Sequence record: ON529852.1
DNA length: 64,000 nucleotides
Strand: one strand, 5' to 3'
Shown here: in pieces, positions 18,088 through 26,264 of the stretch
Layout of the letters: every line of letters begins with the position of its first letter
Numbering within the stretch: position 1 is the first letter of the stretch
The notes under the pieces: generated by a model
Told to the model about the DNA's origin: nothing
The model's database searches: none
Seen by the model: the letters and a program-made list of their open reading frames with translations, nothing else
Translations under genes and position numbers: made by a program

Positions 18088-18270
18088 GTGAGTGAGAAGT
18101 CAAGGCTGACCGTGAGCGGCCGCTGGGCGCGTAGCGAGCCCGTCATCCAGAACTTGCCCGGCTCGTTCGCGGACGCCCTGAGTTGGGCCTTCGAGCGTCA
18201 AGACTTCTCCGAAGTCCGGCGGCGTCTGAAGGCGGGCGACCTGGAGCCCCGGAACACGTCTCATGACTGA
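18088..18270 (+). CDS. hypothetical protein
   Basis: GGAG RBS; promoter TTGCAA-N17-TAGTGT 18031-18059. Confidence 0.55.
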   Translation: MSEKSRLTVSGRWARSEPVIQNLPGSFADALSWAFERQDFSEVRRRLKAGDLEPRNTSHD

Positions 18271-18763
18271 CGGCGTGGAATCGCCCCTGGAGCATCGCCA
18301 GCCGCGTCGTGGCGACAAGGTCGTGTCCGCCCGGTTCGGCGACGTGGCGGTCGAAGGCGTGGTCGTCTCGTTCGCCTCCGGGCGACTGACCCTGCAAAGC
18401 CCCAAGGACGGCAGGCTGACCTTGCCCATTCAGCGCTTCACCTGGAAGCCCCGTGCGAAGCACTGGGTATGCTGGCCCGCCGACATGCTGCGCCATATGA
18501 AGACGGTGCTTCAGGCCGAAGAGGCGCATGCGCGCGCCCGCTATGGTCTGGAGCCTCGCGTAGGCGACTTCTGCCTGATCTCCGGCCGCGCCGGATGGAT
18601 CAGCCACTACTACGCCAAGCCGGTCCGGGCCGATCCGAGAGCCGGCGCCATATTCAACGCCCTTGCCGGCTACGAGATCACGACCGCCGCAGGACCTGTG
18701 CGCATCGAGTGCGGCCAGATCACCTACGACGCCGAGGAACGCCGCTGGATCGCCACGCCCTGA
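18263..18763 (+). CDS. hypothetical protein
   Basis: overlaps upstream ORF, GGAG RBS. Confidence 0.7.
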   Translation: MTDGVESPLEHRQPRRGDKVVSARFGDVAVEGVVVSFASGRLTLQSPKDGRLTLPIQRFTWKPRAKHWVCWPADMLRHMKTVLQAEEAHARARYGLEPRVGDFCLISGRAGWISHYYAKPVRADPRAGAIFNALAGYEITTAAGPVRIECGQITYDAEERRWIATP

Positions 18764-18862: not shown

Positions 18863-19138
18863 ATGACCAAGACCGCCGCTGTTACGCCGCTCGCCCTTGT
18901 GCCCGCTGAGCCCGCCGCGCCGATGAGCGCCTCCGAACGCGCTCGCGCTTCCGCCGCCGTCGCCAAGGCTGACGCGCAGGCTGCGCTGGAAAACCTTCAG
19001 GCCAAGATTGAGGCCTGTATCGCCGAAGCCCGCGACCTGTCCACGGTGGATACGATCCCGGAGGCCGTGCGCACCGAGATCAACAAGTTCGCCGGCAACA
19101 GCGCCGGGTCGCTCGACGCCATTTCGCGCGCCCGCTGA
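18863..19138 (+). CDS. hypothetical helical protein
   Basis: GGAGG RBS; first gene of island. Confidence 0.8.
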   Translation: MTKTAAVTPLALVPAEPAAPMSASERARASAAVAKADAQAALENLQAKIEACIAEARDLSTVDTIPEAVRTEINKFAGNSAGSLDAISRAR

Positions 19139-19175: not shown

Positions 19176-20303
19176 ATGACTGCATCCAAAGGCTTCGACA
19201 AGCCTGTCGCCCAACCCGTGCCCCAGGCCGTCAAAGACGCGGCCGCAGCGACGGGTTGGCACGCCGCCGACACCTATGAGCCCCGCGCGACGGGTCTCAA
19301 TGTGGCGCAGGGACAACCCCCCGCGACACGCCCCTCTGGCGTCCCCTCGGGGCGCGCCCTGACCCCGTTCACCCTGCAAGAGGTGGTGGACTACGGCAAG
19401 CCGCAGGCGACCGCCGCCGCCACGGTGGCGTCGAAGATCACCGGCTCGGCGCGGGCCGGGGACATCGACGAGGTCGGCAAGGCGCTGACCGCCCTGCTGA
19501 CCGGCGCCCAACAGTATGATCCGTCCAAGCTGGGCAAGGGCGGGTTCCTGGGCTTCTTCAAGCGCAAGAAGCGCGAACTGGAAGCCCACTACAAGTCGGT
19601 GGACGCCCAGGTGAACACCCTGGCGGCGGACGTCCAGAAACACATCGGTCATTTCCAGGGCCGCATCGGCGATCTGGAAGCCCTGAAGAAAGAAAACGCC
19701 GCGCGTCACGGCGAACTCGGCGCGGCGATGGAGCGCGCCAACGAGCGCATCGCCTGGATGAAGGCCAACCCGCCGGAAGTCGACGCCACCGACCCGATGT
19801 CGGCGACCAATCTCCAGACCTGGAACAATGTCATCGCCTACGCCGAAAAGCGTGTGGACGACCTGCGTCGCGCCCAGATTCTCTGCGAGATGCAGGCGCC
19901 CCAGATCGACATGATGCAGCAGAACGCCGGCATGCTGGTGATGAAGTTCGGAGAGGTTCAGACCACGACCCTGCCGCAACTCCAGATGGGCTTCTCGCTC
20001 TACATCGCCAATATGGAGGCCCAGAAGGGCGCCGACTTCTCCAAGGCGATCGACGACATGAACAACGACCTGATCACCCGGAACTCGGCCCAGTTGGGCG
20101 CCACGACGGTGGCGGTGCGCCAGCAGATGGCGCGCTCGTCGGTCGACCTGACTACCCTTCAGACGGTCAAGGACAATCTGTTCAACACCATGGATGAGTG
20201 TAAGCGCATTCAGTCCGAACTCTCCACCCGCCTGCAAAACGAGCGCCCCGCTCTGGAACAGGCCAGTCAGGACCTCGCCGCCCGTCTCGCGACCGGCGCC
20301 TGA
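19176..20303 (+). CDS. telA: TelA/KlaA toxic anion resistance family protein
   Basis: KGGFLGFFKRKK...HYKSVDAQV, long coiled coil, TTLPQL..., SSVDLTTL. Confidence 0.8.
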   Translation: MTASKGFDKPVAQPVPQAVKDAAAATGWHAADTYEPRATGLNVAQGQPPATRPSGVPSGRALTPFTLQEVVDYGKPQATAAATVASKITGSARAGDIDEVGKALTALLTGAQQYDPSKLGKGGFLGFFKRKKRELEAHYKSVDAQVNTLAADVQKHIGHFQGRIGDLEALKKENAARHGELGAAMERANERIAWMKANPPEVDATDPMSATNLQTWNNVIAYAEKRVDDLRRAQILCEMQAPQIDMMQQNAGMLVMKFGEVQTTTLPQLQMGFSLYIANMEAQKGADFSKAIDDMNNDLITRNSAQLGATTVAVRQQMARSSVDLTTLQTVKDNLFNTMDECKRIQSELSTRLQNERPALEQASQDLAARLATGA

Positions 20304-20345: not shown

Positions 20346-21113
20346 ATGGCTGTCATCGACCTGGAAAAGAAAGTCGAGAACGTCACGATCTCGCTGGCGA
20401 AGGCCGGCATCACCAAGGTGCCGCCGCTGCGCGTCGCCGCCGTCTATGACGACTCCTACTCGATGCAGCCGCTCTACGCGAACGGCGCCGTCCAGAAAGC
20501 CGCCGACCAGGTTCTGGCGGTCGGCATGAAGTTCGACGACGACGGCCAAGTGGACAGCTTCAAGTTCCACAACGAGGCCTTCTACGTCGGCACCCAGGAC
20601 GAGAACCAGTTCGGCACCTTCGTCAAGGAAGCCATCCTGACGCGCAAGGACCTGTGGGGCGGCACCAGCTACGGCGCCGGACTGAAGGCGGTCATGGACT
20701 TCTTCTTCGGCGCGGGCATCCGCTCGACCGCCTTCGTCCCCGGCGCCAAGAAGAAGGGCCTGTTCGGCTTCGGCGGCGGCCAGTCCAAGGGCACCTACGA
20801 GACCAAGACCTTCAAGAGCGAGGGCACGGACCCGGTCATGGTGATGTTCTTCACCGACGGCGAACAGACCGACGGCATGGCCGCCTCCAAGATCATCGCG
20901 GCGGCCGAGAAGGCCAACCAACCGATCTACTTCAACCTGATCGGCGTCGGCAGCGCGACCAACTTCAGCTATCTGAAGAAGCTGGCGGACGACTATGACA
21001 ACTGCGGCTTCGTCCACCTGAAGGGCTTCGAACTGACCGACGCCCAAATCTACGACGCCCTGCTGGGCACGGAAGAGGTCGTCGCCTTCCTGCGCAAGCA
21101 CGGCGCCTCCTGA
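20346..21113 (+). CDS. von Willebrand A domain protein of ter-cluster type
   Basis: MIDAS-like DDSYSM, WGGTSY, FFTDG, FNLIGVG, LADDYDNCGF. Confidence 0.85.
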   Translation: MAVIDLEKKVENVTISLAKAGITKVPPLRVAAVYDDSYSMQPLYANGAVQKAADQVLAVGMKFDDDGQVDSFKFHNEAFYVGTQDENQFGTFVKEAILTRKDLWGGTSYGAGLKAVMDFFFGAGIRSTAFVPGAKKKGLFGFGGGQSKGTYETKTFKSEGTDPVMVMFFTDGEQTDGMAASKIIAAAEKANQPIYFNLIGVGSATNFSYLKKLADDYDNCGFVHLKGFELTDAQIYDALLGTEEVVAFLRKHGAS

Positions 21114-21180: not shown

Positions 21181-22176
21181 ATGGACATCGGGCTCGGCTA
21201 CGTAGCCTTGGCGGTCATCGCCCTGGGGCTGCTCGCCTTCGATCTTTACAACCACCGCAAGCCCGAAGAGGTGTCGATCAAGAGCGCAGCGCTCTGGTCG
21301 GGCTTCTACGTCCTGGCGGCCCTGGGCTTCGCCCTCTACATCAACTTCCAGTATTCGACCGAGTGGGCGCAACTGTTCCTGACCGGCTACGCGCTGGAGA
21401 AGGTCCTGGCGGTGGACAACCTGTTCGCCTTCATGATTATCTTCTCCTACTTCGGCGTCGCGTCGAAGTTCCAGCACAACATCCTCTACTGGGGCATCCT
21501 GGGCGCCATCGTCTTCCGGGGCGTGTTCGTGGTGCTGGGCACGTCGTTCACGGCCCTGTTCGGCCCCTGGGCGCTGCTGATCTTCGCGGCCATCATCGGC
21601 TACACCGCCATCAAGATGCTCCAGGGCGGCGGCGATGACGGCGACGAGGCGGTCGACTACGCCGACAAGTGGTATATCAAGGGCGTCAAACGCTTCCTGC
21701 CGGTCACCGAGAAGACCGACGGCGGCAAGTTCTTCCTGAAGCTGCCGACCAACGCCGGCAAGACGGCTCTGTTCGCCACCCCGATGTTCCTGTGCCTGAT
21801 CGCCATCGAAGTCACCGACGTGGTCTTCGCCTTCGACAGCGTCCCGGCCGTGATCGCGGTCACCAAGGAGCCCTTCCTGGTCTATTCGGCCATGATCTTC
21901 GCCATCCTCGGCCTGCGTTCGCTCTACTTCGTGCTGGAAGCGCTGCGCCGCGTCCTGTCGCGCCTGGAGACGGCGGTCATCTTCATCCTGCTCTTCATCG
22001 CCGGCAAGCTGACGGTGCAGGCAGGCTCCACCCTGGTCCACGACTTCACCGGCGCCATGCAGCCCGTGCATATCGATCCGCTGCTCAGCCTCGGCATCGT
22101 CATGACCCTGCTGGTCGGCGGCGTGATCTGGTCGCTGGTCAGCCCCGTCAAGGACGACGAAGCCGAAGCGGCCTAA
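21181..22176 (+). CDS. terC: TerC family integral membrane protein
   Basis: GYALEKVLAVDNLF, EVTDVVFAFDSVPA, AILGLRSLYF. Confidence 0.93.
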   Translation: MDIGLGYVALAVIALGLLAFDLYNHRKPEEVSIKSAALWSGFYVLAALGFALYINFQYSTEWAQLFLTGYALEKVLAVDNLFAFMIIFSYFGVASKFQHNILYWGILGAIVFRGVFVVLGTSFTALFGPWALLIFAAIIGYTAIKMLQGGGDDGDEAVDYADKWYIKGVKRFLPVTEKTDGGKFFLKLPTNAGKTALFATPMFLCLIAIEVTDVVFAFDSVPAVIAVTKEPFLVYSAMIFAILGLRSLYFVLEALRRVLSRLETAVIFILLFIAGKLTVQAGSTLVHDFTGAMQPVHIDPLLSLGIVMTLLVGGVIWSLVSPVKDDEAEAA

Positions 22177-22251: not shown

Positions 22252-22899
22252 ATGAGCGTTATCGACCTCTCCAAGGGCGCCAACATCAACCTGGCGAAAG
22301 ACGCCCCCGGCGTCACCCGCTTCGTCATCGGCCTGGGCTGGAACGCCAACCCGCAGAGCCCGCCGGACCTGGACGCCTCGGTCCTGCCCTGCACCAAGGT
22401 CGGCGGCAACCCGGTCCTGCCCGACGACAAGTCGTTCGTCTTCTACGGCAATCTGAAGTCCACGGACGGCGCCATCATCCACTCGGGCGACAACCTGACC
22501 GGCGACGGCGACGGCGATGATGAGCGTATCGCCATCGACACCGCCAAGCTGAACCCGGCGATCGACGACATCCTGATCGTCGTGACGATCCACCAGGGCA
22601 AGGAGCGCGGTCAGAACTTCGGCCTGGTCCGCAACGCCTACGCGCGCATCTACGACGCCGACAAGCTGGCGGCGGCGGAAGCGGCCAATCCGAACCTGTC
22701 GGACAAGGAACTGCACGACCTCGCCCTGGCGCAGTATGACCTCGAAGAAGACGCCGGCGGCTACACCGCCCTGGTCTTCGGCGAACTCTACTCGAAGGAC
22801 GGCGACTGGCGCTTCAAGGCGCGCGGCGAAGGCCGCAACGAGTCGCTGGGCGAACTGGTCACCAGCTACCTGCCGGCCGGCGTGTCGGTCTCGGGCTAA
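22252..22899 (+). CDS. terD: TerD family protein
   Basis: GLGW, DLDAS, VFYGN, HSGDNLTGDGDGDDE, NFGLVRNAY, GELY...WRFKA. Confidence 0.95.
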   Translation: MSVIDLSKGANINLAKDAPGVTRFVIGLGWNANPQSPPDLDASVLPCTKVGGNPVLPDDKSFVFYGNLKSTDGAIIHSGDNLTGDGDGDDERIAIDTAKLNPAIDDILIVVTIHQGKERGQNFGLVRNAYARIYDADKLAAAEAANPNLSDKELHDLALAQYDLEEDAGGYTALVFGELYSKDGDWRFKARGEGRNESLGELVTSYLPAGVSVSG

Positions 22900-22911
22900 G
22901 CCTTCCGATGA

Positions 22912-22941
22912 GGCCGGGGGACGTTCGCGTCCCCCGGTTTT
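22912..22941 (+). terminator. intrinsic terminator
   Basis: GGCCGGGGGACG-TTCG-CGTCCCCCGGTT followed by T run. Confidence 0.85.
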
Positions 22942-22996
22942 CGACTACCTTGTGAGACGACCGGCCCGCGCGGCCGAAGACCTGGAGGACGTTTCC

Positions 22997-24328
22997 GTGC
23001 CCAAGCCCGCCCCGCCCCCGATTGATATGGAAGCGCTGGTGCGTCGGCCGAAGAAGGCACAACCGAACGTCCCGCCGCCGATCGACATGGAGGCGCTGGT
23101 GCGGCCCCGCAAGCCGTCGGCCCCAGAGACGCGCGCCCATCCTGTCGACGTCGACATGGAAGCGCTGGTGCGTCGCCCGAAGAAGGCTCCCGCCAAGGTC
23201 GAGCCTGTCGAAGACCCCAGAATTGAAGTCTACATTCAAAACCGCGTCAACGGATGGAAGCCCGTCATGGCCGCCGGCGCCGCTGGATATAACGGAAATC
23301 AGGGCCATTCCCTGGAGAACGATCCGGACATCCAGGCGAGGATCGCCCAGCGCCTGGCGACGCGGCCGGGGGCGGTCCCCCAGAGCACGGGCGGCGGTTT
23401 CTACGGCAAATCCGCGCCGGCTCCGGCGACCGATATGGAGGCTCTCGTGCGCCGCGCGGGGCCGCCTAGCCCCGCCGAGGCATCCCTGACGGAATACACC
23501 CTGTACGCCATGGCGCGCAACGACGGGTATAAGGGCACGCTTGTGGAGTATGTCACCCAACACCGCGCCAAGGTCGCCGCCGGTCCCGACATGGCGGCGC
23601 TGGTCGCCCGCCGGAATGCCCCGTCGCGTTCCGCCCCTGACATGACGGACTTGATCCGCCGCCCCGCTCAGGCCGCCGCTCCGGCGAACGCCAACGCCCG
23701 ACGCAACCAGCAGGTCAATGCGCTGATCGAGCGCGCGCGTCAGGTGGAGCCCAGCGTCGTTGACGGCATGCGCTTCAACACCCGGCTTCACCGCTTCCTG
23801 GACTTGCGGCCGACCGCCTGGACGACCTGGGGCGAGGACGAAGCCCGCGTCGTGGTGCAGTCCGCTTCGGGGCAGGCGGAGGCGTCGCGCCAGCTTTCCC
23901 TCGCCAACGCCGTCAAGTGGGCCGCTGAATGCGAGCAGGCCTACGCCAAACCGCCGGGGTTCATGGACCGCTTCTCCCAGCAGACGCGCCCGGAATTCTA
24001 TCGGGTCCGGCTGGAGCAGTCCCGCGACATGCTGATCAAGGTCCAGGACGACCTTCAGCAGGTGCAGGACCGGGTGCGCGAGAACCTGGACCGGCTGCGG
24101 ATCGACGTGGTCGTGCTTCAAGTCGCCACCGAGCAGGTCACCGACGCCTCGGATTCGATCATCGCCACGCGTCGCCTCCAGACCCTGGTCCAGGTGCAGG
24201 CGACCGCCGCCATGATTCTCCAGGGCTGCGAGAGCCTGGCCCAGACCGCCGCCGCCCAGGCGGCCACGGTGTCGTCGTTGCTGACGGTGACGATCCCCAA
24301 CTGGATCATCGCCCAGCAAAATCGCTGA
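22997..24328 (+). CDS. TelA-like coiled-coil protein with N-terminal DMEALVRR repeats
   Basis: GTG start after GGAGG; six D-M-x-x-L-V/I-x-R motifs; C-terminal VTIPNW resembles TelA end. Confidence 0.75.
   Translation: MPKPAPPPIDMEALVRRPKKAQPNVPPPIDMEALVRPRKPSAPETRAHPVDVDMEALVRRPKKAPAKVEPVEDPRIEVYIQNRVNGWKPVMAAGAAGYNGNQGHSLENDPDIQARIAQRLATRPGAVPQSTGGGFYGKSAPAPATDMEALVRRAGPPSPAEASLTEYTLYAMARNDGYKGTLVEYVTQHRAKVAAGPDMAALVARRNAPSRSAPDMTDLIRRPAQAAAPANANARRNQQVNALIERARQVEPSVVDGMRFNTRLHRFLDLRPTAWTTWGEDEARVVVQSASGQAEASRQLSLANAVKWAAECEQAYAKPPGFMDRFSQQTRPEFYRVRLEQSRDMLIKVQDDLQQVQDRVRENLDRLRIDVVVLQVATEQVTDASDSIIATRRLQTLVQVQATAAMILQGCESLAQTAAAQAATVSSLLTVTIPNWIIAQQNR
23024..23662 (+). repeat. six coding repeats of DMEALVRR motif
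   Basis: copies start at 23024, 23084, 23153, 23432, 23588, 23639. Confidence 0.9.
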
Positions 24329-24406: not shown

Positions 24407-25645
<1,239 letters not shown>

Positions 25646-25646
25646 G

Positions 25647-26264
25647 ATGAACGCCCACGTCAACTCCATCTACGCCTACGAGGTTCACGACCACAAGGGC
25701 ACCAAGGCGGCTGTCTTGGGAGCCCTATCGGCGGCGGGGTCACGCGGGCTTTGCTGCGAAGAACTCGAAGATCGCCTGGGTGACGCCCATAACACGATCT
25801 CGGCCGCCTGCACCCATCTGCGCAAAGGTTATGCGGGCGCCCCCTTGATCTGCTGGACGGGGCAGAAGGTGCGGACTCGGAGTGGACGCAGCGCCGGACG
25901 CATGCGCCTGGTTCTCGCCGGTGAAATCGTCGCCGCCGAGCCGGTGAAAAAGAGGCTGCCCCGGTCCGCCAGCAGTTCCAGCGTCTTCACCAACGGAAAC
26001 GCCAACTCTGCGGCGGCTGCTCGATCCATGACTGGGGCGGCGCAGGCGCAGGAGGTCAAGGTGTTGGACGCCTTGTTGATCAACCGCACCGCCGACCAGA
26101 TCGCCATGGTGACGGGACTTCGCCCGCAGTCCGTGACGGCGAGGCTGAGGGCTCTTAAGGCCAGGGGACTGGTGCGCGAGACCGGCGCCACCCGCATGAC
26201 GCGGAAGAATCGCCCGGCCGCCGTGCTGGAACGGGTGACGCCTATGCTGGGACTGACACACTGA
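25647..26264 (+). CDS. tandem winged-helix DNA-binding protein
   Basis: two wHTH-like units ending TGQKVRTRSGR and TGATRMTRKNR. Confidence 0.7.
   Translation: MNAHVNSIYAYEVHDHKGTKAAVLGALSAAGSRGLCCEELEDRLGDAHNTISAACTHLRKGYAGAPLICWTGQKVRTRSGRSAGRMRLVLAGEIVAAEPVKKRLPRSASSSSVFTNGNANSAAAARSMTGAAQAQEVKVLDALLINRTADQIAMVTGLRPQSVTARLRALKARGLVRETGATRMTRKNRPAAVLERVTPMLGLTH

Follow-up and report, generated by a model that had tools for sequence, protein, structure and literature searches.

A phage gene annotated only as 'hypothetical protein' lies directly after four genes of a Ter module and encodes a protein in which one octapeptide recurs six times. What is this protein, does it belong to the module, and what might its repeated peptide do? 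These questions arise in a 64-kb window (the whole stretch of DNA analysed here, to which positions refer unless a contig is named) whose sequence matches, at 100% identity, Brevundimonas phage vB_BpoS-Kabachok (ON529852.1), a 356-kb record of the Dolichocephalovirinae with the host B. pondensis LVF1. Ter/TelA systems have been connected with resistance to tellurite, colicins and phages, their mechanism has been unclear for decades, and we know of no physical model of the Ter/TelA assembly.

Gene X and the phage Ter module

We refer to the product of the gene as protein X; its GTG start codon at 22997 matches the GenBank coding sequence. The elements of the locus are as follows.

19176..20303, + strand: genuine TelA (PF05816, E 4.8e-49)
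20346..21113, + strand: vWA (TerF-like) protein (PF10138, E 1.2e-27)
21181..22176, + strand: TerC-type membrane protein, canonical TerC and not DUF475 (Pfam match)
22252..22899, + strand: TerD, directly upstream of X (PF02342, E 3e-56)
22911..22944, + strand: 13-bp G+C-rich hairpin followed by UUUU in the TerD-X gap of 97 nt (RNA fold), a possible terminator or attenuator
22984..22989, + strand: ribosome-binding site GGAGGA, 7 nt before the GTG start of X (read from the sequence)
22997..24328, + strand: coding sequence of protein X (KABACHOK_02770, 443 aa), GenBank label 'hypothetical protein'
24407..25645: RtcB RNA ligase, downstream of X

An abbreviated Ter operon of four genes (TerD, TerC, TerF and TelA) has been described in Caulobacter jumbo phages (Iyer et al. 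2021, PMC7824862). The module in the window is one instance of the same gene cluster; however, that description leaves out the gene found after TerD in all complete modules that we examined. The order TelA, vWA, TerC-family protein, TerD, X was found in phages Marchewka, Kikimora, CcrColossus, CcrPW and CcrSC, and also in the metagenomic contigs that reach far enough upstream, including T4-like contigs that carry gp13 and gp15. At 13 loci, drawn from giant phages of the siphovirus type and from T4-like contigs, X comes directly after TerD, and fewer than 25 nt often separate the two genes. Shorter contigs reveal the TerD-X pair alone, and two contigs start at or just before X, without upstream context. 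Protein X is an unnamed and previously unrecognised fifth component of the phage-borne Ter module. In the vWA protein of the window, the MIDAS residues look intact (D-D-S-Y-S, G-G-T-S and T-D-G, read in the translation).

The sole exception to the TerD-X order is contig L094, where TelA is followed after 4 nt by an X-like gene and TerD, vWA and TerC are all missing; the X-like protein has a folded-looking N-terminus in place of the motif tail. The occurrence of a TelA-X pair without these three genes points to TelA as the putative partner of the X C-terminal domain. This X-like gene (L094 6001-7305, P0082) and a second protein (P0092) represent a variant in which the N-terminal domain is folded and the C-terminus carries additional residues. 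The L094 pair lies near NAD-salvage genes (NAMPT and NMNAT-NUDIX), which also flank the module of contig L095.

Marchewka retains the hairpin between TerD and X, as does Kikimora, where the stem sequence differs; loci with a short gap (L007 and CcrColossus) lack it. As a terminator or attenuator, the hairpin may set the ratio of TerD to X.

Several other features of the modules were recorded. The membrane protein, compared across the window (21181-22176) and contigs L003, L007, L009, L004, L006, L061, L062, L095 and L096, comes in two types: canonical TerC (PF03741 only) in Kabachok, Kikimora and L095, and DUF475 (PF04332) in the other examined modules. The Kabachok TerC is 88% identical to that of Kikimora and about 30% identical to the DUF475 type, suggesting that this gene has been swapped within an otherwise syntenic module. 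Two small ORFs without a Pfam match (18263-18763, 166 aa, and 18863-19138, 91 aa) precede TelA; ORFs of matching size are found before TelA in Marchewka, Kikimora, L007 and L009 as well, and both may thus be part of the giant-phage module. RtcB follows X in Dolichocephalovirinae-type contigs and not in the T4-like contigs L061, L062 and L096, which suggests that its link to the Ter module is lineage-specific. The 205-aa protein encoded after RtcB (25647-26264) gave two separate winged-helix/HTH matches (residues 18-52 and 143-189), and Marchewka has a short ORF in its place. In one phage contig, a PRTase_3 gene (L096 1142-2017) lies directly upstream of TelA, reminiscent of the nucleotide-derivative biosynthesis arm in full bacterial Ter systems.

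A family profile of X searched against 1.8 billion representatives recovered 91 clusters at 50% identity, 80 of them with E<=1e-10, in which the C-terminal domain is conserved and the tail is variable. Apart from one marginal match, the family was missing from the 401 Pseudomonadota genomes that were sampled, TelA being present in 28 of 201, and a scan of IMG/VR for relatives found none. A search of sequencing runs returned only wastewater and virome samples, each matched at a small share. As far as seen, the X family is phage-borne.

Relationship of the C-terminal domain to TelA

The preliminary description of this locus had called the C-terminus of X 'TelA-like'. Two features of this part of the protein are relevant.

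23687..24325, + strand: conserved C-terminal helical domain, residues 231-443 (model, family profile and HHalign)
24290..24304, + strand: T-I-P-N-W signature near the X C-terminus, common to the T-x-P motif of TelA

Protein X gave no Pfam family at E<=1, and at the same threshold the Pfam TelA family (PF05816) matched none of 74 X-family members. A search of X against PDB sequence profiles found no match, and PDB fold searches with its model returned generic helical bundles only. The C-terminal domain itself is a confident helical bundle in AlphaFold2 (residues 231-443, pLDDT >90).

The relationship to TelA emerged from profile-profile comparison. When the X C-domain profile (a 74-sequence alignment) was compared with 8 phage and 28 bacterial TelA proteins, HHalign gave a probability of 96.8% and an E-value of 2e-10 over 173 collinear columns, with X residues about 262-442 aligned on TelA 57-275 of 375, the first two-thirds of TelA. 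The score was 75.3 for the real TelA profile vs 18.5 for reversed TelA and 20-34 in twelve block-shuffled TelA controls. With small profiles the comparison was not significant in two runs and borderline in a third, and the enlarged profiles alone were decisive for the homology. P434 and W436 of the signature are conserved in at least 90% of the 74 sequences; the T-I-P-x-W block alone was still recovered in the block-shuffled controls. In addition, the protein-language-model neighbours of X are TelA clusters, and Foldseek gave weak matches of X to phage TelA proteins.

Protein X resembles TelA/KlaB (PF05816) in the collinear alignment with TelA 57-275 and in the T-x-P-x-W signature, and both are encoded in one module in all complete contexts. 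The differences are also clear. The model of X ends after the second long helix, whereas that of a bacterial TelA has a further helix at 347-402; the long hairpin is shortened in X, which also lacks TelA's last long helix. Thus X falls short of the full TelA architecture (about 330 residues, with the last long helix after T-x-P). Where bacterial TelA has a single N-terminal peptide, X-family tails carry an array of 2-6 copies, which in the window's protein are of a new sequence type. On the strength of the HHalign comparison with its controls, the language-model neighbours and the Foldseek matches, we conclude that the X C-domain is a divergent paralogue of TelA that stops short of the last long helix. 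The 'TelA-like' label therefore holds in the sense of remote homology, but X has no Pfam TelA match and the genuine TelA of the module is a separate gene (19176-20303). We conclude further that gene X defines an undescribed phage-borne family of TelA paralogues, which forms the fifth gene in phage Ter modules.

Motif arrays in the N-terminal tail

The six copies of the octapeptide (motif A) and two small structural elements are distributed along the N-terminal half of X as follows; the copies were located by translation.

23024..23047, + strand: motif copy 1, DMEALVRR, starting at residue 10
23084..23107, + strand: motif copy 2, DMEALVRP, starting at residue 30
23153..23176, + strand: motif copy 3, DMEALVRR, starting at residue 53
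23216..23362, + strand: candidate HTH insert of terminase-small-subunit type, residues 74-122, containing MAAGAAGY (profile match and model)
23432..23455, + strand: motif copy 4, DMEALVRR, starting at residue 146
23474..23584, + strand: small two-helix element, residues 160-196, also present in orthologues P0010 and P0011 (alignment)
23588..23611, + strand: motif copy 5, DMAALVAR, starting at residue 198
23639..23662, + strand: motif copy 6, DMTDLIRR, starting at residue 215

The sequences and places of all six copies agree with those listed in the preliminary description, and their general form is DM(E/A/T)(A/D)L(V/I)xR. The N-terminal half is disordered and Pro/Ala-rich: the linkers between motifs consist of 29% Pro and 19% Ala, and in the AlphaFold2 monomer, built from a 22-sequence alignment, the tail including the motif regions has a pLDDT of 43-54. 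Short helices were modelled at two motif copies, and none of the motifs docked onto the protein's own C-domain in this monomer.

The two structured elements within the tail differ in confidence and distribution. The insert was modelled as four short helices with a pLDDT of about 78, and its residues 75-119 match a terminase-small-subunit HTH profile (phrog_11494, E 2e-5). Its two best PDB matches, 4zc3 and 2cmp, are DNA-binding domains of terminase small subunits and are weak (E 0.4-0.5), and the Pfam search of X at E<=1 assigned it to no family. In the alignment, the insert is confined to Kabachok and Marchewka-type orthologues. The two-helix element consists of helices 164-175 and 182-193, with a pLDDT of about 90.

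The array is far from a chance product of tail composition, as 20,000 shuffles of the 230-residue tail yielded none with two or more motif matches. A degenerate DNA pattern for motif A has five matches in the whole 356-kb phage record, all within gene X. Across 12 orthologues we collected 50 instances, with D kept in 43, M in 41, L in 47 and the second R in 48 of the 50; their consensus is [AP]-P-P-[PA]-[PIV]-D-M-E-A-L-V-R-R-P. Between Kabachok and Marchewka, identity is 90% at the motif residues vs 66% in the linkers. The copies within X differ from each other by synonymous codons (GAT/GAC, GAA/GAG, GCG/GCT, CTG/CTC and CGT/CGG/CGC). Together, the synonymous differences, the instances in orthologues and the uneven identity support the earlier suggestion that selection acts on the peptide. 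Motif A thus has the hallmarks of a short linear motif, in that it lies in a disordered region of biased composition and is more conserved than its flanks across orthologues.

Exact scans for the octapeptide returned 44 bacterial and 6 viral matches, all of them single copies without Pro flanks and none from Caulobacterales, the genome-collection scan having returned no Brevundimonas or Caulobacter record. As DMEALVRR occurs elsewhere in these scans only as scattered single copies in folded proteins, an origin by copying from a host protein was rejected. The six viral matches represent one conserved phage/prophage protein (...KQSS-DMEALVRR-DLA..., IMG/VR contigs L055-L060), which also occurs in a Sulfitobacter genome (L039); its context is folded and unrelated to the X array.

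Conservation of the motif in homologues, on which the preliminary description had in part staked its reading, proved to be partial. Motif A is kept in the Brevundimonas-phage clade and is absent from the homologues of Caulobacter phages, which carry arrays of another peptide (motif B, [KR]-x-L-x-[FIL]-[PG]). Two to six copies of motif B are found in most X-family tails (for example, KPKPLNIPE, PRALSIPDA and EPKGLDFG, as well as ARRLSFPEPE three times in one protein). In 9,423 tail residues we counted 64 matches to the strict pattern vs 1.4 +/- 1.2 in shuffles, an excess that is somewhat inflated because these data also served to define the pattern; the C-domains, with 21,587 residues, contain no match. 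Tails are between 0 and about 290 residues long, and the existence of members without any tail indicates that the tail is not essential to the core role of the family.

In the tree of C-domains, the deep branches have motif B only, three proteins have both motifs, and a crown clade that includes the Brevundimonas phages has motif A only (3-6 copies). Judged from this tree, motif A is the derived form, which arose once, coexisted with motif B and later took its place in the clade of Brevundimonas phages. The CcrPW peptide PRPLDLSKLQRAR aligns with PPPIDMEALVRRP of Kabachok and bridges the two motifs, which suggests that motif A may be an extended derivative of motif B. We also considered whether the motif type tracks the membrane protein of the module (TerC vs DUF475). 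This was rejected, as one DUF475 module has an X without motif B; the Kabachok clade has canonical TerC and most other modules have DUF475, and the motif type follows no single module protein cleanly.

A single B-like peptide is also present in bacterial TelA, in an N-terminal extension about 60 residues before the Pfam domain (loci L081-L091). Examples are RRLSLPPVDEI, SPLSLPAVEEI, LELTPPDPVP and AVILPEPM, and we found no description of this peptide. In the AlphaFold2 model of a bacterial TelA, it is undocked, with a pLDDT of 47-59. The checked neighbours of these bacterial TelA genes include no TerD and no vWA. Given the single peptide in bacterial TelA, the motif looks like an old feature of the TelA family that may have been multiplied in X.

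Possible roles of the array

The most plausible reading of the array would be multivalent docking or a decoy, as the preliminary description had proposed. In its fuller form, which we hold with evenly balanced confidence, protein X would be a multivalent tether that links a TelA-like sub-membrane assembly to a partner through the motif arrays of its tail. The C-domain would co-assemble with TelA under the membrane, and the Pro/Ala-rich disordered tail would act as the carrier of short-linear-motif arrays across the X family. The ancestral motif B, an extended peptide, was replaced in the clade of Brevundimonas giant phages by the short amphipathic (I/V/P)-D-M-E-A-L-V-R-R-P. With six copies, one X molecule could bind the same partner several times over or join a lattice by cross-links. 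Candidate partners are TelA or X itself, TerD, the vWA protein, the TerC-type membrane protein and a host protein. The array and its conservation, the disordered tail, the homology to TelA, the constant order of genes and the succession of the two motifs were observed; binding by the motifs, the identity of the partner and the location under the membrane are what we infer. A comparable layout is known from disordered scaffolds with multivalent short linear motifs, such as PopZ of Caulobacter; X, too, has a helical domain of oligomerisation type and a Pro-rich disordered region with short putative interaction helices. The comparison concerns layout only, as the two proteins have no sequence relationship.

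Alternatively, each copy could be a two-turn amphipathic helix that binds the membrane weakly on its own, six of them together holding X and the TelA-like assembly on the inner membrane. The Asp cap, the Met/Leu/Val face and the Arg-Arg end of the peptide, its hydrophobic i, i+3, i+4 pattern and its flanking prolines are compatible with this, as are the short helices modelled at two copies. The Ter module is membrane-associated via TerC, and sub-membrane structures have been proposed for TelA and the vWA protein (PMC7824862). However, such a helix would offer only three or four hydrophobic residues, accompanied by Asp and Glu, and the invariance of Asp and Met exceeds what lipid binding needs. 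Known membrane-targeting helices are longer and stronger. Moreover, the Pro of motif B rules out a helix, which means that the two types of motif would have to act differently, and we regard membrane binding by the copies as rather unlikely.

Another explanation comes from the likeness of motif A to the C-terminal peptide of FtsZ, which the six copies would mimic in order to titrate or hijack the membrane anchors and regulators of host FtsZ (FtsA, FzlC and MinC-type), either blocking division or placing the Ter assembly there. Phages commonly block the division of their hosts, Kil of phage lambda (PMC3961180) being one example. In two alphaproteobacteria, neither of them Brevundimonas, the FtsZ tail reads (L/I)EIPAFLRRQAN and follows a long Pro/Ala/Gln-rich linker, as motif A in X follows a Pro/Ala-rich one. 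Over ten residues, this tail and (I/V)DMEALVRRP share 3 identities and 5 conservative pairs with a BLOSUM62 score of 18, a score reached or exceeded by a fraction of 5.5e-4 of 298,335 ten-residue windows from bacterial ORFs. The likeness was nevertheless noticed post hoc, among about 10-15 motifs considered, and motif A departs from the FtsZ core pattern acidic-(I/V)-P-x-F-L-(R/K) in having Glu for Pro and Leu for Phe, the Pro being almost invariant in FtsZ. The motif A copies are internal and repeated, whereas the FtsZ peptide is C-terminal. Motif A also has a different evolutionary origin, having grown out of motif B, which does not resemble FtsZ. Finally, the Caulobacter-phage orthologues lack motif A, although the FtsZ tail of their hosts is expected to be much the same. 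FtsZ mimicry is thus unlikely. The same holds for a bolder version of the tether, in which X would be a programmable hub: its TelA-like domain would polymerise with TelA, the motif arrays would set the client and its copy number, and the switch to DMEALVRR would reflect a newly captured client, perhaps the host receptors of the FtsZ tail, tying Ter to host division control. We consider this doubtful.

The repeats could also be neutral, left by tandem duplication in a spacer that needs only length and flexibility, as the tail lengths of 0 to about 290 residues and the fast-evolving linkers would allow. The synonymous differences, the irregular spacing and the unrepeated flanks argue against neutral expansion, as do the retention of the peptide in 12 orthologues despite linker divergence and the existence of two distinct motif types, each strongly enriched in tails only; we regard it as improbable. 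Least credible of all is a multi-copy precursor from which a protease cutting at or between the repeats would release identical peptides: repeated identical peptides with spacers do recall multi-core precursors, in which identical peptides recur regularly between spacers, but no conserved protease or modification enzyme adjoins gene X in the loci compared, the tail forms one protein with a conserved structural domain, and the number and spacing of the motifs vary.

Returning to protein X as a component of the module, these results mean that the phage Ter operon comprises five genes and not four. The turnover from motif B to motif A clearly illustrates how, within a phage lineage, one short motif can take the place of another. 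For Ter/TelA systems, a conserved fifth component provides a direct experimental handle, and the copy number of its motifs hints at stoichiometry.
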